Shown here: in pieces, positions 15,445 through 44,798 of the stretch
How positions within the stretch are numbered: position 1 is the first letter of the stretch
Layout of the letters: every line of letters starts with the position of its first letter
Made by a program: the position numbers and the translations under genes
IMG/VR virus record: IMGVR_UViG_3300032675_000001
Coordinates: 186,001 to 250,000 of that record
DNA: 64,000 nt
Strand: one strand, 5' to 3'
Notes under the pieces: generated by a model
What the model was told of the DNA's origin: nothing
Seen by the model: the letters and a program-made list of their open reading frames with translations, nothing else
Databases searched by the model: none

Positions 15445-16053
15445 ATGGAATTGGAATTTTCAGAAATAAAACTGTATAATCCCGGTGTACTCAAAACGCG
15501 ACTTCCTGTAAGAGTGTTTGCTGAATTGACTAGGGATTTGCAAAAACAAGTCGATTCTAAACCTAAAAGGTACAACACTGATTTAGCAGGGCATTTAGAA
15601 ACAGAATTGCAATATGACATAAACGGCGATTTCAGGCAATGTATAAACTCAATGTTTTTGGAGTACAGAGAACGTTTTGACTTCTATCGTAATGATGACT
15701 ATGTTATAGATTCAAGTTCTTGGGTCAACTTTCAGAAGAAACACGAATATAATCCATTGCATTATCATTACCAAGATGTGTCTTGGGTGGTTTGGATAAC
15801 TATTCCATATGATCTTCAAACTGAAATGTCTCTTCCCAGTATAAGAGAAGCAAACGGGAACGTAGCTTCAAAGTTTCAGTTTGTCTACAACAAGCTGGAT
15901 AGTGGAATACATATGCATGAAATCAATATTGACAAAAGTTGGGAAGGGGTACTTATCATGTTTCCCGCCTACCTAAAGCATCAAGTATATCCATTCCAAA
16001 CCTCAGACGAGCATCGCATTTCTATTGCAGGAAACATCAAGATTATAAAATAA
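15445..16053 (+). CDS. Putative 2OG-Fe(II) oxygenase
   Basis: WVNFQKKHEYNPLHYH, FPAYLKHQVYPF, RISIAGN. Confidence 0.8.
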   Translation: MELEFSEIKLYNPGVLKTRLPVRVFAELTRDLQKQVDSKPKRYNTDLAGHLETELQYDINGDFRQCINSMFLEYRERFDFYRNDDYVIDSSSWVNFQKKHEYNPLHYHYQDVSWVVWITIPYDLQTEMSLPSIREANGNVASKFQFVYNKLDSGIHMHEINIDKSWEGVLIMFPAYLKHQVYPFQTSDEHRISIAGNIKIIK

Positions 16054-16080
16054 CATGCGATTTGGTGAGATAAGTATAAT

Positions 16081-16527
16081 GTGATTAACGTATTTTTACA
16101 AGACTTCTACACTCGCCTTCGTGCTTGGCACGAACTCAAAGAAAACCTACAAAACAAAGACCTTGAGACGGTATGTGTTGAGGTTGATAGGTTTTGGCAA
16201 CGTTGCCCTATGAGTGCTCATTATCTGCATCCCGATGAGATTGAGTCATGGCCAAATCCTTGGGAACTCCTCAAGGATAATGACTATTGCTACTATGCCA
16301 GAGCATTGGGAATGATATACACCTTGTTGCATTTGGGTATCAAAAACATTGACTTTGTTGACGGAATAGACGATAATGGTGAAATGGCTGTATTAGTCTT
16401 AGTCGATAGCGCAAAATATGTGATGAATTGGTATCCAGACTCAGTATTAAATACAAACCTAACAGATTTCAAAATCACCAAACATATTAATATAGAAACG
16501 TTAATAAAGAAAATAGGCAAAGAATGA
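16081..16527 (+). CDS. Hypothetical protein
   Basis: 148-aa ORF. WPNPWEL...YC...ALG suggests a transglutaminase-like fold. Confidence 0.6.
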   Translation: MINVFLQDFYTRLRAWHELKENLQNKDLETVCVEVDRFWQRCPMSAHYLHPDEIESWPNPWELLKDNDYCYYARALGMIYTLLHLGIKNIDFVDGIDDNGEMAVLVLVDSAKYVMNWYPDSVLNTNLTDFKITKHINIETLIKKIGKE

Positions 16528-16563
16528 TTAATGTAGACATCGGTAGATTTACTGACTATAACA

Positions 16564-16633
16564 TAAATAAAGATGTAGTTCGCGGGACTGGAATCCCCAA
16601 CTACTCTAATACTATTACGGAGTATCAGTAATG
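16564..16633 (+). promoter_or_regulatory. Late promoter plus two hairpins, the second occluding the endonuclease RBS
   Basis: TAAATA at 16564; GTAGTT..GGGA/TCCC..AACTAC stem; ATACT/AGTAT stem overlapping GGAG. Confidence 0.6.
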
Positions 16634-17329
16634 ACTATTTATTCTAAAAATAATAATCCTTGCGGATATTATGTTTATGCATATTTGCGTAGCAAAGATT
16701 CTATCATTGCCAAAGTAGGAACCCCATACTATATAGGGAAAGGCATAGGACAACGGGCGTGGTGTCATTTTAAGGATGAGGCCACCCAACCACCGGTTGA
16801 TCACCGATATATAGTAATATTAGAATCCGGTCTTACTACTACCGGAGCACTCGCAATAGAACGCAGAATGATACGTTGGTATGGCCGAATCGATATCGAC
16901 CATGGTGGTATTTTAAGGAACATAACAGAAGGAGGGGATGGTGCTTCTCTGTCAGGAAAACTAAATGGAATGTACGGGAGAACTGGTGAATTACATCCTC
17001 ATTATTGTAAAAAAAGATTTGACATGATTGGTGATCTTAATCCGATGTTCGGGAAACGTGGTGAAGAACATCCGGCATTTGGGTATAGACATTCAGATGA
17101 ACGTCGAAAGAAAATTGCCGATTCCAAAAAAGGGGTTAAGCGAACCGTGTTTGATCAATCGGGAGAAAAGAATCCAATGTTTGGAAGAAAAGGTGAAGAC
17201 CACCCAAGTTTCGGTAAAAATCCTCCTAAAATAGTGTGTCCGAATTGCAGAAAGTTGGTAAGCAATGCAATGTTTGTGCGGTGGCACCAAAATGACAAAT
17301 GTGTACGGAAAGACAAAAATAGTGATTAA
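16631..17329 (+). mobile_element. Free-standing GIY-YIG-type homing endonuclease with NUMOD3-like repeats
   Basis: YYVYAYLR...[19 protein letters not shown], and repeated G..NPMFGK / HSDERRKKI. Confidence 0.85.
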
Positions 17330-18974
17330 TATTGTAAAGCGATCAGGAAAAAAAGAACCACTTAGCCTAGAAAAATGGCAGGCCCAAGTTGCTAAGGTAT
17401 GCAACGGGACTGCTGATGTAAGTCAATCAATGATTGAAATTAAGGCACACCCACATTTTTATGACGGAATCACTACCCAAGAGATTGATGAGATTACTCT
17501 TAGGGCCGTTGTGGATTTGATTGATGTAGAATCCAATTCAGACGTTGGACACACTAATTACCAGTATGTCGCCGGAAAGCAGAGATTGTCCATGTTACGG
17601 AAATCTGTCTATGGACAATATAACCCACCATCATTGTATGAGATTGTAAAGAAAAACGTTTCGGTGGGCCTTTACACGCCAGAACTCCTTGAATGGTATT
17701 CCGAAGATGAATGGAATAAAATGAATGATTTCATAGATCATACTAAGGATGAAGCGTACTCATACGCCGCAATCGAACAACTTATTGAAAAATATCTTGT
17801 TCGCAATAGAGCCACAAAGGAAATCTATGAAACTCCGCAGGTTCGTTACATGGTTGCAGCAGCAACCGTTTTTCACAGGGAGGAACCAAACACCGCAAGA
17901 ATGCGATTCATCAAAGAATACTACAATGCGGCCAGTGATGGGCTTTTTACTCTCGCTACCCCAGTACTTGCTGGCCTTGGAACTCCGACCAAACAGTTTA
18001 GCAGTTGTGTTCTTATTAGGAGCGATGATGACCTCGATAGTATTTTCGCTTCCGGAGAAATGATGGCAAAATATGCCAGCAAACGTGCTGGCATTGGCTT
18101 GGAAATCGGAAGACTTCGCCCTCTCGGTTCGCCTATCCGAGGGGGTGAAATCATGCATACTGGTATGATTCCATTTCTAAAGAAATGGTTTGGTGATTTG
18201 CGTTCTTGTTCTCAGGGAGGTATTCGCAATGCAAGTGCTACAGTATTTTATCCTATCTGGCATTATCAGTTTGACGATCTCATCGTTCTTAAGAACAATC
18301 AGGGAACTGAGGAGACCCGAGTGCGCCACATGGATTACGGGGTTGTCCTTTCAGGAATGTTCTGGAGAAGATTTAAAAACAAAGAGAACATTACGTTCTT
18401 CGATCCTAACGAAGTGCCTGATTTATATGAAGCCTTCTATTCAAACACGGCTAAATTCGAAGAACTCTACGTAAAATACGAAAAGCGTAAAGATTTACGC
18501 AAGAAGGTAATGAGCGCAGAGGAAGTCTTCAAGAGTGGCATTCTCAAAGAACGCACTGACACTGGACGTATCTATCTTGTATTCATTGATAACGTGATGA
18601 ATCAGGGTCCATTTGACCCTGAATACCACACTATCTATCAATCAAATTTGTGTTGTGTAACCGGAGACACTGTGGTTGAATTTCTACATCCTGACGGGAG
18701 AACTGAAAAAATGTCAGTAATGAGTGCCGTTGAAAGATTTCAACTTGGTGCGCTGACTGAATCAAAAATTAAGAGTTTTAGTAATGGAGAAGTTTCTTGG
18801 GAAAATGTTTCCGCTGCCATTAAAACCAAAACCGTTACTGAACTCTATGAAATTGAAGATGAATATGGCAATGTCTTGAAGTGTACTGGCGATCACTTGA
18901 TATACACTAAAAATCGCGGCTATGTTCGTGCAGATGAGTTAGTAGAAACAGACGAGTTATGTTCTGAAATTTGA
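17322..18974 (+). CDS. nrdA: Ribonucleotide reductase class Ia alpha subunit, N-terminal fragment fused to the N-half of a split intein (18654-18971)
   Basis: ATP cone (IVKRSG), [23 protein letters not shown] followed by intein CVTGDT...[12 protein letters not shown] start at 17322. Confidence 0.95.
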
Positions 18975-19007
18975 TTACCGAGTATAAATACATATGGAGA
19001 GCTTCAT

Positions 19008-19946
19008 ATGTATAAAGAACTGTATAAATTGTTGATTGATAATGCAAAGAAAGAGAACCGAATGAAAAATCAGGAAAATTATTATGAACGACACCATGTG
19101 GTTCCTGATTTCATGTTCAAAAACAGAAAGAGACCTGGACCAGTGGGGCACTTAGATGGTGATCCTGATTCTCCAGAAAATATTGTTTTTCTTACTTTTC
19201 AAGAACATCTTTTGGCGCATTATTATCTATATGAAATATATAAAGATACTCGTTATGAGTATTCTGCTGGCTCAGCCCTACAGTTTTTCTTTGTAAAAGC
19301 CACTGGAAATCACAAAAGACAATTAAATCTGTCAGAAGTAGATAAATCGTTTCTTAATGAAATGGAGCATTTGCGATTGTTAGGAAATGAAAGTATCAGC
19401 AAGGCGAGAAAAGGTAAGATGCCAGTAGTTGATGCAGTGACTAGAGAAAAAATCGGTTCTGTATCAATTAATCATCCCAAGGTGATATCAGGTGAATGGG
19501 TGCATCATAGTAAAGGCAAAAAGCAAACTTGGAAACATCGCTCAATGAAGGGCTCTATGAATACGAATTTCAAAGAATTGACACACGATAGAAAAGAACG
19601 CTTGTGGAAATGTGTAGCCGCTTCATGTGAAGAAGGTCATCTCAAGAAGAAACTATTATGCGAAGCATTGAAAAAAGAGTTTACCGAATTCAAAAAGATT
19701 TCATTAGCTTGGATAAAAAATAACTATGATTCATTTGATGATCTAGTTAAAGAAACAAATAAGAATTTAAAGCTGATCATAAAGTATGATCCATATCATA
19801 GAAGTAATGAGCAACGAAATTTGAATGCAATACAATCTTCAAAACATCGTTGGTATAATAACGGTAATCACAACATTAGAGTTACCGATGTTGACACTTT
19901 TATTAAAAACAATCCAGAATACATACCGGGAAAAATTAAATTATGA
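19008..19946 (+). mobile_element. Free-standing HNH homing endonuclease between the nrdA halves
   Basis: YERHHVVP...D.PEN.V.LT..EHLLAHYYL (MobE-like); TATAAATA late promoter at 18983. Confidence 0.85.
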
Positions 19947-21031
19947 TTAAGATTAGAAAAATTGAGGTAGAACCAACTGATGTATATGATCTATCTGTTC
20001 CAGAAACCGAGTGTTTTTTTGCAGACAACATGTTAGTTCACAACTGTGAAATTCTACTTCCGACAAAATCATTTAAGAGCCTTGATGATGAAAATGGCAG
20101 AATTTCTCTCTGCACTCTTGGTTCAATGAACTGGGGTGCATTTAGGAATCCAGAAGATATGCGTAGAGCGTGTCGCATTCTGTTACGAAGTTTGAACAAC
20201 ATTCTTGACTATCAGGATTTCCTGTCCATTCAGTCTAAGCTGTCAAACGATGAGATTAGACCAATCGGGATCGGAGTCACCAATCTTGCATATTGGTCCG
20301 CTAAACGCGGATACAAGTACGGCGAAGCAGAAGCGTTGCAGGAAATCAAGAGTTGGGCAGAGCATCAGACTTATTACTTGATGGAAGCTAATGTTGAGCT
20401 TGCTAAGGAACGCGGACCTTGCTTGCATTCTGACAAGACTCGTTACGGACAGGGAGTTTTCCCTTGGGAACTTAGAGCAAAGGGCGTAAATGACCTTGCT
20501 GACTTTACTCCTGAACTTGACTGGGAAAGCCTCAGAGCCGATATGATGACTTACGGTGTTCGTAACTCTACAGTTGGTGCTATTGCTCCTGTTGAATCAT
20601 CATCTGTTGCTATCAACTCAACTAATGGTATAGCGATGCCTATGAGCCTGATTTCAATCAAGGAATCAAAGGCAGGTTCATTCACTCAAGTTGTTCCAGA
20701 ATACCACAATGCAAAGGTTCGTAAGAACTATCAGTTGATGTGGGACCAGACAGACTGTATCGGATACTTGAAAACCGCAGCAGTATTGGCAGCGTATATG
20801 GATCAGTCCATCAGCACTGATACTTTCTACAACCCTGCTCACTTTCCTGATCGCAAGGTACCAACTACGCTCATCGCAAAGAACCTAATGTTGGCATATT
20901 ACTGGGGAATTAAGACCTTATACTATAGCCTTGTCAACAAACAGGGCGCAAAAGAAGAAGCAGATGAGGCACCACTTGAAGTCATTGACTTCTTTGAAGA
21001 AGACGGTGACTGCGAAAGTTGCAAGCTATGA
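19943..21031 (+). CDS. nrdA: Split intein C-half (19943-20044) plus the ribonucleotide reductase alpha C-terminal fragment
   Basis: MIKIRKI..VYDLSV..FFADNMLVHN|CEI, then LCTLG, IGIGVTNLA, KTLYY and C-terminal CESCKL. Confidence 0.95.
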   Translation: MIKIRKIEVEPTDVYDLSVPETECFFADNMLVHNCEILLPTKSFKSLDDENGRISLCTLGSMNWGAFRNPEDMRRACRILLRSLNNILDYQDFLSIQSKLSNDEIRPIGIGVTNLAYWSAKRGYKYGEAEALQEIKSWAEHQTYYLMEANVELAKERGPCLHSDKTRYGQGVFPWELRAKGVNDLADFTPELDWESLRADMMTYGVRNSTVGAIAPVESSSVAINSTNGIAMPMSLISIKESKAGSFTQVVPEYHNAKVRKNYQLMWDQTDCIGYLKTAAVLAAYMDQSISTDTFYNPAHFPDRKVPTTLIAKNLMLAYYWGIKTLYYSLVNKQGAKEEADEAPLEVIDFFEEDGDCESCKL

Positions 21032-21810
21032 AACTAGGCGTTTATGGGGACAGTTTTGGTACATCCAAAAATCCTGCCATAAAAACAGCTTGGTACAACT
21101 TGCTTGGTGAAATGCTAGGAGCAACTGTTGAAACTCATGCAGTTGGCGGCAGTTCTGTGTACTATTCTTACAAAAGATTTTTGGCTACACATGAAAGATA
21201 TGATGTCATTGTTTTTATGGTAAGCGATCCCATAAGGTATACAAGAGATATATCAGAAGACTTTCCTGATCTTTTTTTAAAAACGGCACCCTTAGACAAC
21301 TTTCGTAAAATGCTTCCAATACCAAATCAGGGAATGGTAAGCGTTATACGAGAGAAGTTGATTAAGGATGGTACAATGACTAAAACCCAAGAAAAGATTC
21401 TTGATGATTTGAATGGATGGTTCAACTCTGTTGATATAGAATACAATACTGATATGGTAGAATTGATGCTATCCAACATTGAGACCATTCATAGCGATGT
21501 CATATTTTATCCCGGCTTTAAGTTTAGCATGGCCAACGATAGAATGCTTAAAACTGGCATAGATAATAGATATAACATGTTGTCTTTAGTAGATGAACAG
21601 GCACACAAGCTAAAAATCAAAAACTTTAACCTATTGCAGTATTCTATGAAAGAAAATGAAAAAACGATGTCGGCGCATTTAGGTCCGGAGTATAATGCGA
21701 CACTGGCAAATCTTTTCTATAGTAAGATCACTGTCGGGAAATGGGACTGGAGTGACTTTGACAACATTGTAATAACTAACCCCACAGACTTTTATTATTT
21801 GAACCAATAA
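21028..21810 (+). CDS. Hypothetical protein, SGNH-like N-terminus
   Basis: GVYGDSF motif; ATGA overlap with the nrdA C-fragment. Confidence 0.6.
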   Translation: MKLGVYGDSFGTSKNPAIKTAWYNLLGEMLGATVETHAVGGSSVYYSYKRFLATHERYDVIVFMVSDPIRYTRDISEDFPDLFLKTAPLDNFRKMLPIPNQGMVSVIREKLIKDGTMTKTQEKILDDLNGWFNSVDIEYNTDMVELMLSNIETIHSDVIFYPGFKFSMANDRMLKTGIDNRYNMLSLVDEQAHKLKIKNFNLLQYSMKENEKTMSAHLGPEYNATLANLFYSKITVGKWDWSDFDNIVITNPTDFYYLNQ

Positions 21811-21833
21811 GATACATTAAAAGAAGAAGATAA

Positions 21834-22934
21834 ATGTCAAAACAGCAGTATAATCTAAACACAAAAACAGACTACCTTCAACGCAAGATGTTTCTTGATC
21901 CTGCTGGACCTGTAACGATCCAGCGTTTTGAAGAAGTCAAGTATCAGAAGCTACAGAAGATTGAGCAAACCGCTCGTGGATTCTTTTGGGTTCCGGAAGA
22001 AGTAAGTCTTACCAAAGATGCAAACGATATGAAGGATGCATCTGAAACGATTGCTCATATTTTTACGGGCAATGTTCTTAGGCAGACCGCACTTGACAGT
22101 TTACAGGGCAGAGCACCAGCACAGGTTTTCACACCCGTATGTTCTATTCCTGAACTTGAAGCAATCATGAGCAATTGGTCGTTTTTTGAAACGAACATCC
22201 ATTCCCGTTCATACTCGCACATCATTCGCAATATTTACAATGTTCCTAAGGAAGTGTTCAACACGATTCATGATACTACGGAAATCATTGATATGGCTGC
22301 AAGTGTAGGCAAGTATTATGATGACTTACATGTGCTCAATTGCAAGAAGGAAGTTGGCATTCATGTTGACGAACAGGAGCATATCAACGCTATTTGGTTA
22401 GCACTTCATGCAAGCTATGCACTTGAAGCATTTCGCTTTATGGTATCGTTTGCTACTAGTCTTGCAATGGTTGAGAACAAGATTTTCATGGGTAATGGTA
22501 ACATCATCAGTCTGATTCTCCAAGATGAACTGTTACATAAGGAATGGACTGCTTGGATTATCAATCAGGTTGTTAAAGAAGATGCAAGGTTCGCAAAAGC
22601 TAAGGTAGATTGCGAAGCAGAAGTACGTAAAATTTACGAAGATGTGATTCGTGAAGAAAAGGAATGGGCTGGGTATCTCTTCAAGAAGGGTCCAGTCATC
22701 GGTCTTAACGAACGCATCATGGTAGACTTTGTTGACTATAATGCCGTAGACGCTCTTAAACAGATCGGCATTAAATACTGGAATCCAGCACCAAAGACTA
22801 CTCCTATCCCATGGTTTAATAAGCATACGGATACGAGTAAGAAACAGACTGCACTACAGGAGAGCGAGTCAACATCGTATGTTATTGGCGTCATGTCCGA
22901 TACTTTGGATTATGATGAATTACCGGATTTATAA
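21834..22934 (+). CDS. nrdB: Ribonucleotide reductase class Ia beta subunit
   Basis: FFWVPEEV, LDSLQGR, ETNIHSRSY (radical Tyr), LEAFRF, DELLH. Confidence 0.97.
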   Translation: MSKQQYNLNTKTDYLQRKMFLDPAGPVTIQRFEEVKYQKLQKIEQTARGFFWVPEEVSLTKDANDMKDASETIAHIFTGNVLRQTALDSLQGRAPAQVFTPVCSIPELEAIMSNWSFFETNIHSRSYSHIIRNIYNVPKEVFNTIHDTTEIIDMAASVGKYYDDLHVLNCKKEVGIHVDEQEHINAIWLALHASYALEAFRFMVSFATSLAMVENKIFMGNGNIISLILQDELLHKEWTAWIINQVVKEDARFAKAKVDCEAEVRKIYEDVIREEKEWAGYLFKKGPVIGLNERIMVDFVDYNAVDALKQIGIKYWNPAPKTTPIPWFNKHTDTSKKQTALQESESTSYVIGVMSDTLDYDELPDL

Positions 22935-22945
22935 GGAGAAAAAGA

Positions 22946-23179
22946 ATGAAGGCAGTTGTATGGAGTAAAGAAAGTTGTCCGTTTTGCGTACAGGCAAAGG
23001 CTTTGTTAACACAAAAGGGAATTGAGTTTGAAGAGCGTAAGATAGGTGCAGAATACACGAAGGAAGACCTACTTGAAGCAGTACCCAATGCAATGACAGT
23101 TCCGCAAATTTTTCTAGACGGGGAACTAATTGGTGGATTTAAAGAGCTTCGTGCTAAGTTTTTAGCAGAAGCAGCATAA
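22946..23179 (+). CDS. grx: Glutaredoxin
   Basis: CPFC, TVPQIF, IGGF. Confidence 0.95.
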   Translation: MKAVVWSKESCPFCVQAKALLTQKGIEFEERKIGAEYTKEDLLEAVPNAMTVPQIFLDGELIGGFKELRAKFLAEAA

Positions 23180-23189
23180 GGAAAAAGAT

Positions 23190-23489
23190 GTGAATTATAC
23201 AGTTAATGAAGTTTATACGTTCAAGTTGAACAGTGGAGAAGAATTAGTAACTAAGGTGTTGGGAGTAGATGGGGATGATATTCTCATTTATGAGCCACTG
23301 GCAGTTACCCCTGCTCCTCAGGGCGTGGGATTGGTGATAGGAATGTTCACCGCAGACCCTAAGTCTGAAACACGACTAAATAGTAAGAACGTTGCTATCT
23401 CTGCACTGACCGATCATAGTGTGAAGGTCAAGTACGTTGAAGCAACAACTGGAATCAAGATTCCAGATAAGAAACTTATTTTAGGATAA
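23190..23489 (+). CDS. Conserved T4-like phage protein (possibly Sm-like)
   Basis: FKLNSGEELV..Y..ATTGI pattern. Confidence 0.6.
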   Translation: MNYTVNEVYTFKLNSGEELVTKVLGVDGDDILIYEPLAVTPAPQGVGLVIGMFTADPKSETRLNSKNVAISALTDHSVKVKYVEATTGIKIPDKKLILG

Positions 23490-23490
23490 T

Positions 23491-23760
23491 ATGGCAGCAC
23501 TTAGCAGAAAAGGCGACCAAAACCAAGTCGGCGGCAAAATCGTAAGGGGAGCATCAACGGTGTTTGCCAACGGTATTGCCGTTGGCTTACATGTAAGCGA
23601 TATCACTTCACATCCCGGTGGAGGCACACACAGTTCATCAAAGACTACCTCAGGTAGTCCGACTGTGTTTGCAGAAGGTGTTGCAGTCCTTCGTGTGGGT
23701 TCCAGTACAAACTGTGGACATTCTATCACACAGGGTAGCCCTAATGTTAACTGTCCGTAA
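23491..23760 (+). CDS. PAAR-repeat spike tip protein
   Basis: GS(P)TVFAEG, RVG..CGH.I..GSPNV. Confidence 0.9.
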   Translation: MAALSRKGDQNQVGGKIVRGASTVFANGIAVGLHVSDITSHPGGGTHSSSKTTSGSPTVFAEGVAVLRVGSSTNCGHSITQGSPNVNCP

Positions 23761-42388: not shown

Positions 42389-42882
42389 ACTGGTTAACTA
42401 TGGTAGGCGGAACCATACCCAAATACGCACAGGAGATTGCTACTGATTTGGAAGAAGCAATGTCTTCTGATAGTGGGCTTACTGAGATTGATTCTCATGC
42501 GTGTGCATTGGCAGCAGCAGTAGCAACCGGAAACGGTGGACTCGGATTTGAGATTTCAATGAATGGTCCTCTGTTCAAGACAAATGAGCGTGAAGCAGCA
42601 AAACGTGCAGCCACACTTCTTTCTTACAAAGATACATTATACATTTTTAACTCCTGCTTTGAATGGTCCGGATTGACTCCTGACATCAGCTATTCTGACA
42701 GCAGTGTAACTGAAACGCAGTATACAATGTATGAGTTTGCGGCTGCAGTGGCTCTTAAGAACAAGGTTTTCATTGCAGAGCGAATGAAGAACCTGACTAG
42801 CATGGGTGTTCCGCACTCTCAGATTATGGCAATCTCTAAGATTGCGGCGGTGGTTGCAACCTTCTCTAAGATTGTTGTTTGA
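42385..42882 (+). CDS. AhpD-like protein lacking the CxxC motif
   Basis: IPKYAQ..L, ACALAAAVA.GN, EAAK.AA, YEFAAAV, KIAAVV match the AhpD layout. Confidence 0.55.
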   Translation: MNWLTMVGGTIPKYAQEIATDLEEAMSSDSGLTEIDSHACALAAAVATGNGGLGFEISMNGPLFKTNEREAAKRAATLLSYKDTLYIFNSCFEWSGLTPDISYSDSSVTETQYTMYEFAAAVALKNKVFIAERMKNLTSMGVPHSQIMAISKIAAVVATFSKIVV

Positions 42883-43437
42883 TTACTTAATACCGATAAT
42901 CATAAATCTACGATACCCGTTGTCATCACTATACCTAATCTCTTTAGTACCAGAGAACAGATACTTTGACATCGGGTATTTTTGTGCCAAATCATCAAGT
43001 TCCTCGTTTGGATTAACGCACAACCAAACATCATCATCGCCAATCGTGACATCACTTGATTGGATGCAAACAAGTTTGCCGTACTCAAGATTCTCAAACC
43101 AATCGTTGGTAGCCATATGTTCTGGCGAACAGTTGATAATCACATCATACCAAGATACATCATATGACCCAGCATCAGCGGTTAAGTTTTGAACTTTTCC
43201 ATCTATCGTCCAAGCGTCTACTATTTTATCAGCGATAGGCTTCACATCAGGGTCTAAATCAATGCCCAAAAAGGCTTGACATTGATCTGGGTTACGTGTT
43301 AGAAGCATAAATGCAACGAGGTTGTACCAACTTCCAAGCACTGCTACCTTAGCATTGTCGGGAAGAAACGGTTCAAGTTCTTTGCACAACCAGAGTTTAC
43401 TCTGGATTTGTCCATGAGAGAAAGCATCAAAGTTCAT
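42883..43437 (-). CDS. Class I SAM-methyltransferase-like phage protein
   Basis: FSHGQIQSKLWL, VLGSWY, GIDLD, VIINCSPEH, RFMIIG. Confidence 0.7.
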   Translation of the reverse strand: MNFDAFSHGQIQSKLWLCKELEPFLPDNAKVAVLGSWYNLVAFMLLTRNPDQCQAFLGIDLDPDVKPIADKIVDAWTIDGKVQNLTADAGSYDVSWYDVIINCSPEHMATNDWFENLEYGKLVCIQSSDVTIGDDDVWLCVNPNEELDDLAQKYPMSKYLFSGTKEIRYSDDNGYRRFMIIGIK

Positions 43438-43461
43438 GTGAATATTTAGATGATTTTTTTC

Positions 43462-43567
43462 TTGACAACAGTTTTTGAATGATATATAAGAGTGAATATG
43501 AAGCGATTTTGAGGAAAAGTTGAAAAACAGCCCCTTAAATGGCGTTTTTTTAAACACGGAATAAATA
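43462..43567 (+). promoter_or_regulatory. Tandem sigma70-like and late promoters heading the tRNA region
   Basis: TTGACA at 43462 with a TATATA/TATAA -10 region; TAAATA at 43562. Confidence 0.6.
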
Positions 43568-43575
43568 AACTTACT

Positions 43576-43722
43576 ATGAATAACACTTGTAACATATGTC
43601 TGCAACAGCATAAACAACTCTGGGCACTCGCCACAGAAGGGTTAACTATGCCTGTAGCATATCCTACAAGCATCCGCGTTAGCTTTAATTCATTGAATGG
43701 TGACGGGGGTACACAGGTTTGA
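43576..43722 (+). CDS. Putative attenuator leader peptide (48 aa, all 20 amino acids)
   Basis: MNNTCNICLQQHKQLWALATEGLTMPVAYPTSIRVSFNSLNGDGGTQV*; the stop lies in the antiterminator arm. Confidence 0.65.
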   Translation: MNNTCNICLQQHKQLWALATEGLTMPVAYPTSIRVSFNSLNGDGGTQV

Positions 43723-43758
43723 CAAAGAAGTAGAAACTTCAAACATCAAATCTAAGGT

Positions 43759-43787
43759 ACCCCGGAAAGAAGTTTCCGGGGTTTTTT
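43759..43787 (+). terminator. Rho-independent terminator (attenuator), mutually exclusive with antiterminator 43706-43763
   Basis: ACCCCGGAAA-GAAG-TTTCCGGGGT-TTTTT. Confidence 0.85.
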
Positions 43788-44019
43788 GTTAGTCAAGGCC
43801 AAAAACTTTGACAGTTGGGATGAAAGACCTGACAAAAGTGCAAGTCGGAACGAGGCTGCAAAGCACTATAAAAAAAGAACGGGCGTCACTGGGATGAAAT
43901 CTGTGGAGGTAACACAGAGAGTAAAAAAGGTGGGGAGCGGGTCAGTCCGAATTGCCGGACAACATATCTCGCTCCATCAAGAAACAAAAGGCTATTTCAT
44001 ATTAGATAGGAGTACGAAT

Positions 44020-44214
44020 ATGTACAAGAAAACTGCAAAAGCGACACAACGAAAAATGATGAAGACTGCAGAATATGCACCAAGTCTCGCTACTTTATAT
44101 GATAAACATGACAAATCACAGTGGTCCGCTAAAACCATTAACCGAGCGATTTCTTCTACAAAGAAAAGAAGGAAAAACTTTGGAAATTATATGTTTGGTA
44201 TGAAGTTCCGTTAA
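44020..44214 (+). CDS. Small basic hypothetical protein
   Basis: AGGAG RBS before ATG 44020. Confidence 0.55.
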   Translation: MYKKTAKATQRKMMKTAEYAPSLATLYDKHDKSQWSAKTINRAISSTKKRRKNFGNYMFGMKFR

Positions 44215-44334
44215 ACATCTATTACTTGAGAACATTGAGATTTAAACACACGCCCTCTTACCATGAATAAGAGACTAGCACATCAGAAATGTTTTCAAGT
44301 AACAGATGTATTATAAATATCACGCAGGATTCAT

Positions 44335-44408
44335 TGCCCCTTCGTCTAAAGGTAGGACAACAGATTTTGATTCTGTTTACGTTGGTTCGAGTCCAGCAGG
44401 GGCATCCA
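44335..44408 (+). tRNA. trnQ: tRNA-Gln(TTG)
   Basis: ACAGA-TTTTGAT-TCTGT; CCA end. Confidence 0.9.
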
Positions 44409-44425
44409 AACTCTTATAAAATAAT

Positions 44426-44500
44426 GCTGCTTTAGCTCAGTGGTAGAGCAACGCATTAGTAATGCGTAGGTCGTCAGTTCGAATCCGACAAGCAGCACCA
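44426..44500 (+). tRNA. trnT: tRNA-Thr(AGT)
   Basis: ACGCA-TTAGTAA-TGCGT. Confidence 0.9.
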
Positions 44501-44507
44501 GAAAAAT

Positions 44508-44584
44508 GGTCCCTTAGTTCAGTGGAATAGAGCGCCTGTCTTCGAAACAGGATGTCGGGAGTTCGAATCTCTCAGGGACTACCA
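44508..44584 (+). tRNA. trnR: tRNA-Arg(TCG)
   Basis: CCTGT-CTTCGAA-ACAGG. Confidence 0.9.
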
Positions 44585-44798
44585 GATTACCTTGTCCTGA
44601 CTGTGAAGAAGGAAACCCGTAACCCTTGATATCCGCAGTGTCCGCCAAGGATGAGTCGGAAGGGAAAAGTTGGAACAAAGCATTCGGGTCCAACAAGGTA
44701 TATAGTTTCGCCGGATTACTAAACAGCGGTTCCTAGGTCTGCCGTGGTGTTTACCGGTAGAGGTTCCCGATACCTCTATAAAAACAGGGAGAATTCAT

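Follow-up and report, generated by a model that had tools for sequence, protein, structure and literature searches.

Evidence for a class Ia ribonucleotide reductase gene fractured by a naturally split intein and a MobE-like HNH gene in a large lake-water phage

Background

Fractured genes, in which the 5' part of a gene joined to an N-intein, a free-standing endonuclease open reading frame (ORF) and a C-intein joined to the 3' part of the gene follow one another on one strand, were described by Dassa, London, Stoddard, Schueler-Furman and Pietrokovski in 2009 (NAR 37:2560; PMC2677866), and include the ribonucleotide reductase (RNR) loci NrdA-1 to NrdA-7, NrdJ-1 and NrdJ-2. The endonucleases in all 26 loci of that study are GIY-YIG or Vsr-like, with an HNH version being predicted but not observed (PMC2677866), and a 2025 survey gives only the Vsr-like case for split inteins. 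The seven NrdA loci are broken directly before the cysteine that bears the thiyl radical, while the point one residue later, after the radical cysteine, was reported for the class II enzyme NrdJ only (PMC2677866). Here we analyze an nrdA locus in a 64,000-nucleotide stretch of DNA, hereafter the window, which comprises bases 186001-250000 of the 360,683-bp virus record IMGVR_UViG_3300032675_000001 from IMG/VR. This locus is very probably a fractured gene: the only class Ia RNR large-subunit gene of a lake-water phage, carrying a class 1 intein one residue after the thiyl-radical cysteine that is split by a MobE-like HNH gene. It shares with the fractured genes of Dassa et al. their three-part layout, the split at the endonuclease-domain position, the catalytic RNR host with its radical-cysteine loop and an origin in phage-like environmental DNA, but differs from them in the class of its endonuclease and, with respect to their NrdA loci, in the side of the radical cysteine on which the break falls.

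A different solution to the interruption of nrdA by a homing endonuclease gene (HEG) is known from phage Aeh1, in which nrdA-a is followed by mobE and then by nrdA-b (Friedrich et al. 2007; Crona et al. 2011, PMC3045599). As in the window, a mobE-type HNH gene is placed in nrdA near the active site and overlaps the downstream nrdA gene, and its expression in Aeh1 is confined to late infection via transcriptional and translational controls. However, the Aeh1 break, between C439 and C462, involves no intein and is rescued non-covalently by short tails, whereas the HNH gene of the window is flanked by full intein motifs. The contiguous RIR1 inteins of Dickeya phage LIMEstone1 and Pseudoalteromonas phage PH357 likewise occupy the active-site loop of phage class Ia NrdA, but these proteins are single polypeptides of 1100 and 1162 amino acids (aa), with an unsplit intein at the classical point SNL-C and no free-standing HEG.

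Results and discussion

A class Ia nrdA gene in three pieces

The phage genome has direct terminal repeats and a completeness rated at 100%, and further instances of it come from at least 16 lake-water metagenome runs as well as from one separate freshwater study. Its nrdA consists of three head-to-tail ORFs on the same strand at 17322-21031 (Table 1), an arrangement on which the ORF list, the raw sequence and the Pfam positions agree, as the preliminary description of this stretch had proposed. The junctions of the locus are spanned by independently assembled contigs from several runs, including the separate study, with 0 differences and no alternative joints; the arrangement is neither a chance pattern nor an assembly artefact. 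The two NrdA pieces align to E. coli R1 at E-values of 1e-131 and 1e-71 in PDB alignments, and between them hold the ATP-cone, all-alpha and barrel domains along with every signature residue of a class Ia RNR alpha-subunit. The C225 equivalent lies within LRSCSQGG, and those of N437 and the thiyl-radical C439 are the N and C of QSNLC at the end of the N-extein; E441, the C462 equivalent (ISLCTLGS), the YY pair and the C-terminal cysteine pair (CESC) are found in the C-extein. A second RNR large-subunit barrel domain (Pfam PF02867, common to class I and II enzymes) was not found in the phage genome. The GTG start of the first ORF agrees with homologue lengths of 550-552 aa. The N- and C-halves of the intein are on separate polypeptides with their own stop (TGA, 18972-18974) and own start (ATG, 19943), the latter sharing ATGA with the HNH stop, as in naturally split inteins. 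The GC content of the HNH gene is 0.30-0.36 as against 0.40-0.46 for the exteins.

Position of the insertion

The Pfam profile Ribonuc_red_lgC matches piece 1 with its positions 1-213 and piece 3 with positions 213-522, and as it resumes on piece 3 at 213, the break in NrdA is exact. In the PDB alignments the last cysteine of the N-extein corresponds to C439 of E. coli R1, the +1 cysteine to position 440 and the glutamate that follows to E441, so that the thiyl-radical cysteine and the catalytic glutamate are encoded by different genes, as had been claimed from the initial reading of the DNA. The adjacent cysteines permit two parses. We chose SNLC-C...HN-CEI, as this parse alone preserves the N-x-C-x-E spacing and yields a sequence that occurs as a natural allele, with block A aligning gap-free on the second cysteine; the parse SNL-CC...HN-CEI was rejected, since it would shorten the N-x-C-x-E loop by one residue and put block A out of register by one. 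The chosen parse places the intein one residue after the radical cysteine. The rebuilt loop SNLCCEI, already anticipated in the preliminary description, exists in nature: about 65 of 80 IMG/VR relatives of NrdA-C have an uninterrupted nrdA, reading SNLCVEILLPT in 40 alleles and SNLCCEILLPT in 16, with Q, M, A or L at position 440 in the remainder. The predicted spliced sequence is thus identical to 16 intein-less alleles of related phages.

Judged from these alignments, the insertion point is of the NrdJ type, directly C-terminal to the radical cysteine, and not the classical NrdA point before it. The NrdJ point was taken from the text of Dassa et al. because a literature search for the native extein residues of NrdJ-1 gave nothing. 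Homologous cassettes with an almost identical C-intein use the classical point (SNL-C...VHN-C(Q/A)EI) in the related loci L092 and L093 and in Yersinia phage TG1. Among the best 120 N-pieces that bear this N-intein, at least 103 have it at the shifted point and 14 at the classical one. The shifted point is possible only where residue 440 can act as the +1 nucleophile, and we infer that the cassette slid by one codon from the classical site in a Cys-Cys background. A wider reading, offered tentatively, would place this locus in a large, undescribed lineage of freshwater phages with a MobE-like HNH gene inside an NrdJ-1-type split intein, in which that slide, chemically possible only where residue 440 is cysteine, has turned the radical cysteine into residue -1.

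A comparable case among cultured phages is Yersinia phage vB_YenM_TG1 (KP202158; a T4-like Tegunavirus), whose HNH protein is the closest cultured-phage homologue of that in the window (32% identity over 82% of the query). TG1 has the same three-gene nrdA layout and a homologous split intein, and it differs in the use of the classical point (SNL-C...VHN-CAEI), with the radical cysteine itself being the +1 residue. Its GenBank annotation gives merely two nrdA coding sequences and an HNH gene, and a literature search found no paper on an HNH version of a fractured gene or on the TG1 locus as a split intein.

Two halves of an NrdJ-1-like class 1 intein

The N-intein, which runs CVTGDT...CTGDH and ends in an acidic tail, has as its best PDB relative the NrdJ-1 split intein (8ubs; E = 8e-12 with phmmer), the two sharing one identical stretch of 13 residues; NrdJ-1 had been named in the preliminary description among the split inteins for comparison. 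The C-intein matches the C-termini of several solved inteins in the PDB sequence search up to the terminal HN. NrdJ-1 (PDB 8ubs/9omb) also resembles the window intein in having an N-half of about 105 aa with an acidic tail, and in its insertion directly after a radical cysteine. On the other hand, its host is the class II NrdJ rather than a class Ia NrdA, the similarity of the C-halves is weak (E = 0.55) and the N-halves are otherwise diverged.

An alignment of seven nrdA alleles with the intein of a UvsW-like helicase of the same genome (see below) shows no variation at Cys1, at the Thr and His of block B (T-x-[DN]-H), at the terminal Asn or at the +1 Cys; the terminal Asn is preceded by His in the nrdA alleles and by Ser in the helicase intein (dipeptide SN). 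Cys1 aligns gap-free with that of the seven related alleles. Block B is T78-G-D-H81; of 111 related N-pieces, 83 have CTGDH and others a conservative variant of it, while the C-intein start motif M[IL]KI[RK][KR]I is conserved in six alleles. A first-residue Cys, TxxH, a C-terminal His-Asn followed by Cys+1 and a match to a solved intein are all present, as in class 1 inteins, and the identification of the 106-aa and 34-aa segments as intein halves, made beforehand from the motifs, is upheld. The last 40 residues of the N-intein carry a net charge of -6 and MIKIRK one of +3, in line with the acidic tail and basic start noted earlier; however, the C-intein as a whole is at -4, and the charge complementarity of the halves is therefore local only.

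When the two halves were modelled as a complex, each with five native flanking residues, the score was 0.85 against 0.02 for the best control, a mark attained by 51 of 78 solved complexes and by 2 of 108 mismatched pairs. Three runs shared at least 94% of contacts, with a partner predicted local distance difference test (pLDDT) value of at least 82 and with Cys1 and Cys+1 in the interface. This modelled score is a measure of likeness to split inteins, not of binding.

According to the mechanism we propose, the three ORFs, probably co-transcribed with nrdB, would give rise to separately translated NrdA-N-IntN and IntC-NrdA-C polypeptides, whose intein halves would join into a HINT fold. Trans-splicing would then begin with an N-S acyl shift at Cys1 and continue through trans-thioesterification to Cys+1 and cyclisation of the terminal Asn to a final S-N shift, yielding a 772-aa NrdA with the active-site loop SNLCCEI and the predicted junction peptide SNLCCEILLPTK.

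The HNH gene and its predicted control

The middle ORF sits between block B and blocks F/G, which is the usual position of the endonuclease domain of an intein. Residues H29, H30, N58, H67 and H71 of its product are invariant across 23 members of the family, which retain 72 invariant columns at identities down to 53%. In an AlphaFold2 model (mean pLDDT 81), strands 26-30 and 59-63 followed by helix 64-78 constitute a beta-beta-alpha element. The protein matches phrog_655, "homing endonuclease", at E = 2.8e-15, and its GenBank homologues carry HNH or MobE annotation. The separate HNH ORF of the preliminary description can thus be placed, with support from motif, profile and homologues, in the MobE-like HNH homing-endonuclease family, and DNA cleavage is predicted for it. 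A phmmer search against PDB sequences returned no relative of this protein. At E <= 1e-5 the family has at least 234 proteins, all unnamed, in a collection of 5.8 billion proteins, and every homologue whose context was read (TG1, L014/L076, L090, L092 and L093/L094) lies between NrdA intein halves.

The start of the HNH gene is enclosed in a potential RNA hairpin, next to a motif resembling the late promoters of T4 (Table 1). The form [TC]ATAAATA of this motif is present at the equivalent place in homologous loci, and in this genome 16 of 41 cases precede an ORF start, the corresponding share for permuted motifs being about 10%. L014 and L090 retain this hairpin before their HNH genes but with a different loop, whereas in TG1 a 12-bp hairpin has the motif, again TATAAATA, in its loop and the Shine-Dalgarno sequence (SD) of the HNH gene as its 3' arm, and would sequester the SD as in the window. 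Sigma-70 promoters and terminators were also scanned for; there was no enrichment, and the three ORFs are not separated by any convincing terminator. By analogy with T4 and Aeh1, read-through transcripts would hide the HNH ribosome-binding site and late transcripts would expose it, and HNH expression would probably be delayed to late infection by the combination of a hairpin on the ribosome-binding site and a late promoter inside or beside that hairpin. The HNH enzyme would serve as the mobility engine of the cassette: its expected targets are nrdA genes without the intein or without the HEG in co-infecting relatives, and repair of the cut would copy the HNH gene along with both intein halves.

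Selection, spread and loss of the cassette

Megablast of the nrdA locus against 50,697 phage records gave no match, the relatives being reached by protein-level searches only. Selection was assessed among the window, L014 and L009. As synonymous divergence (dS) was saturated in most pairs, we give the proportions of nonsynonymous (pN) and synonymous (pS) differences in place of dN/dS, which was calculated for L014 versus L009 and for one further IntC pair only. Across all segments pS was 0.66-0.87, near saturation, and pN was low: the values were 0.02-0.05 (pS 0.66-0.76) for IntC, 0.13-0.14 (pS 0.74-0.77) for IntN and, between the window and L014, 0.18 (pS 0.74) for the HNH gene. The dN/dS of L014 versus L009 was 0.055 for IntN and 0.063 for IntC. 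By these measures both intein halves are under strong purifying selection.

Only about 220 bp of the HNH gene are left, as remnants, in L009 (5780-6000), where IntN (80%) and IntC (94%) stay intact with stop and start. In P0196 and P0205 the intein halves are fused in frame via short linkers, resulting in contiguous mini-inteins without an endonuclease. On a tree of 60 exteins the split-intein state is patchy, with at least 4-5 changes, and the nearest NrdA relative of the window, L013 (94%), is without the split intein. Nucleotide identity between L014 and L009 is 82% and 92% in the intein as against 72% and 69% in the exteins. The patchy tree and the greater likeness of the intein fit horizontal spread by homing, accompanied by losses. 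As far as can be read from these sequences, the lineage shows all stages of the model of Dassa et al., namely the empty site, the contiguous mini-intein, the split intein with an active-looking HEG and the split intein with a decayed HEG.

The preliminary description regarded such fractured genes as known but rare. That the kind is known, as a split intein with a free-standing endonuclease, is correct, but the published endonucleases are GIY-YIG or Vsr-like and not HNH. Rarity does not hold for this lineage, in view of at least 176 NrdA N-pieces with this N-intein in the 5.8-billion-protein collection, the size of the HNH family and the same layout in TG1. The split arrangement is kept in more than 100 diverged sequences, and the split-intein nrdA with an HNH gene is common in freshwater phages, not a one-off.

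Alternative explanations

The intein halves could conceivably have ceased to splice and merely clamp NrdA-N to NrdA-C, the enzyme working as an unspliced heterodimer in the manner of Aeh1, whose two NrdA pieces function unspliced through their added tails. A few codons downstream of where the window gene is broken, relatives of this phage do have nrdA broken without an intein, the pieces bearing a basic tail and an acidic head. We nevertheless consider a non-covalent enzyme distinctly improbable here, as a clamp would have no need of Cys1, TxxH, HN and Cys+1, and yet the splicing nucleophiles and block B are all retained and invariant over diverged alleles under strong purifying selection. The barrel has at its centre the finger loop N437-C439-E441, and the break falls within this loop, where, to go by the known R1 structure, about 140 leftover intein residues should block the active site, while the tail-type breaks of L013, L061, L071 and L093 are at another position. 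Further, an Aeh1-type break has short non-intein tails devoid of intein motifs, and the window locus has full intein blocks. A decaying locus, with nrdA inactivated by the insertion and the phage depending on the host RNR, would have a parallel in the insert-riddled nrdA genes of Campylobacter phages, some of which have been proposed to be degenerating. This is still harder to credit, given that the exteins, intein halves and HNH gene are all intact ORFs with pN far below pS, that the catalytic residues are complete, that intact nrdB and glutaredoxin genes follow and that the arrangement is so widely preserved. Group I introns are frequent in phage nrd genes, such as T4 nrdB, and the intervening DNA might be removed at the RNA level as a group I or II intron, or skipped by ribosomal bypass. 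However, a permissive scan of 16000-23500 with Rfam covariance models, including those of group I and II introns, yielded 0 matches at E <= 1. The insert is flanked by in-frame intein motifs with homology to solved inteins, and the mini-intein alleles P0196 and P0205 are contiguous; we accord this explanation practically no weight.

A fourth possibility concerns mobility alone: the intein may splice and the HNH gene may no longer encode an active homing enzyme, being domesticated or in decay, with the cassette inherited only vertically. In its favour, the split intein of L009 persists beside a decayed HNH gene. The low pN relative to pS of the window HNH gene, the conservation of its HH, N and H among the invariant columns and the patchy distribution on the extein tree speak against it, and we regard it as unlikely.

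Several observations weigh against a splicing intein with an active HNH enzyme. Each intein half alone scores below the gathering threshold of PF14890 (27.2 and 23.8 versus 35.8 bits), which is expected since each piece is half a domain, and the score of the modelled complex may in part reflect the model's memory of solved split inteins. A cysteine at -1 beside Cys1 and Cys+1 makes an unusual setting, in which splicing could be slowed or redox-trapped, and the SD of the C-intein is weak (GGGA about 13 nt upstream). The HNH assignment stands on the motif, the PHROG match and sub-threshold matches to Pfam PF14412 (AHH, of the HNH/EndoVII superfamily), with 19.3 versus 22.3 bits for the window protein and sub-threshold scores in 16 of 23 members. 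Foldseek of the full-length model, which is extended and multi-domain (predicted template modelling score 0.45), gave no PDB match at E <= 0.001; the best match had E = 0.13, and faint matches to HNH domains were at ranks 17 and 46. The late-promoter reading, too, is by analogy with T4 and Aeh1.

Neighbouring genes

Table 1. Coordinates of the nrdA locus and its flanks in the window
Feature	Coordinates	Strand	Remarks
GIY-YIG-like free-standing endonuclease gene, 232 aa	16631..17329	+	stop overlaps nrdA GTG start
ORF 1, NrdA-N + N-intein	17322..18974	+	alternative upstream starts ATG 17292, 17265
nrdA-N extein, 444 aa	17322..18653	+	ATP-cone, all-alpha domain, first half of barrel; C-terminal QSNLC
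N-intein, 106 aa (18654-18971) + stop	18654..18974	+	Cys1 18654-18656; block B TGDH 18885-18896; acidic C-terminal segment
Late-promoter-like motif, T4 type, TATAAATA	18983..18990	+	17 nt upstream of HNH start; putative function
RNA hairpin, 11-bp	18988..19013	+	encloses HNH SD (GGAG, 18996-18999) and start codon (19008-19010); putative function
HNH (MobE-like) homing endonuclease gene, free-standing, 312 aa	19008..19946	+	HH...N...H at residues 29-30, 58, 67, 71
ORF 3, C-intein + NrdA-C	19943..21031	+	opens with MIKIRKIEVEPTDVYDLSVPETECFFADNMLVHN (34 aa), then CEILLPT
C-intein, 34 aa, MIKIRKI...LVHN	19943..20044	+	terminal His-Asn 20039-20044; LVHN-C at 20036-20047
nrdA-C extein, 328 aa + stop	20045..21031	+	Cys+1 (position 440), then E441 (CEILLPT)
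263-aa ORF	21019..21810	+	overlaps nrdA stop; begins MKLGVYGDSFG
nrdB, class Ia small subunit	21834..22934	+	functional partner of spliced NrdA; ORF list, Pfam
Glutaredoxin/NrdC-like ORF, 77 aa	22946..23179	+	CPFC motif; position beside nrdB

The GIY-YIG-like gene upstream of nrdA (YVYAYL...YYIGKG, NUMOD3 repeat) is found in the same place, among the 80 relatives, only in the identical contig L006, and a 49%-identical copy in L013 is elsewhere and on the opposite strand. The 263-aa ORF between nrdA-C and nrdB has no Pfam or PHROG match, and its predicted structure resembles phage DUF6071 and SGNH-GDSL hydrolase-like proteins (template modelling scores 0.62-0.71). The spacer between nrdA and nrdB ranges from 0 to about 2 kb among relatives, which makes it a variable slot like the mobE position in T4. 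The ORF with the CPFC motif is likely to encode the RNR reductant, going by motif and position, as in L090 and L092, where Pfam marks Glutaredoxin.

Other interrupted genes in the phage and its relatives

The same genome has a second fractured gene outside the window, which encodes a UvsW-like helicase (UvsW_N, ResIII/DEAD and Helicase_C domains) at G000:C1 ~42,600-44,700 on the minus strand (loci L086 and L089). It is split inside motif II at DE-CH: the N-piece runs VMVDE-CFDGEARVL...VTGNHKF...HEIVNKT to its stop, and the second piece is MKLIRKTEIDKPDEVFNLHIENDHNYIVDGAVVSN-CHMAK. Between the intein halves there is a 311-aa PD-(D/E)xK-like endonuclease ORF, with a match to phrog_15427 (E = 1e-24) and a weak one to TnsA-like_N. 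PHROG 16259 spans the helicase N-piece including its N-intein, indicating that this arrangement recurs in phages.

Three different solutions are seen in the relatives L093/L094 (ENA and JGI metagenome contigs), L092 and L083, in which nrdA is in 3 or 4 pieces. In one, an atypically placed split after the C225 equivalent leaves a 19-aa N-intein, LRSC-CVTPDTWVEVLDEVDSEDK followed by a stop, then an ORF of 364-369 aa (in L083, a 234-aa HNH) and a C-intein of about 135 aa ending MVLTHN-SQGGIRN. Another is the HNH split intein at the classical point SNL-C. The remaining one consists of an 80-aa piece with a basic tail, a GIY-YIG gene and a next piece with an acidic head, without intein motifs, as in Aeh1. 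Aeh1-like intein-less breaks also occur 7-12 codons after E441 in L013, L061/L062/L080/L082 and L071-L073 (IMG/VR), where NrdA-a has a basic tail, for example ...LDATRKIVKVKKKDSAKFLENKPADFVNVRKL before its stop, and NrdA-b an acidic head, for example MSELYEYVDAVPEDDEEYDYYEVDEVEG-RVALCTLGS. The ORF in these breaks is 243-262 aa long; that of L013 is nearly the same in sequence as the GIY-YIG-matching ORF of L093, with which those of L061 and L071 have only the C-terminal half in common. In L084 (4580-6080), nrdA is interrupted after ...CAEITLPNSPFESIDDEGE by a 1.3-kb insert whose opposite strand carries a 372-aa HNH-like ORF, and in L001, the jumbo Klebsiella phage KP13-7, five hypothetical ORFs separate nrdA_1 from nrdA_2.

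Conclusions

Fractured genes have been known since 2009 and the concept is unchanged by this locus; what is new is the HNH endonuclease and the shifted insertion point in a class Ia NrdA. The HNH class is thereby added to the endonucleases that fracture intein-bearing genes. A new split intein of the NrdJ-1 family, with a Cys +1 nucleophile and the native flanks ...SNLC and CEI..., becomes available, and the second, unrelated split intein of the same genome may serve in orthogonal protein ligation; if the NrdA pair splices fast and is orthogonal to that of the UvsW-like helicase, the two would form an orthogonal pair that co-evolved in nature. Maturation of NrdA could be redox-sensitive owing to the three adjacent cysteines (-1, 1 and +1), and the use of two insertion points, set one codon apart, by the same cassette is relevant to the question of how inteins pass from site to site.

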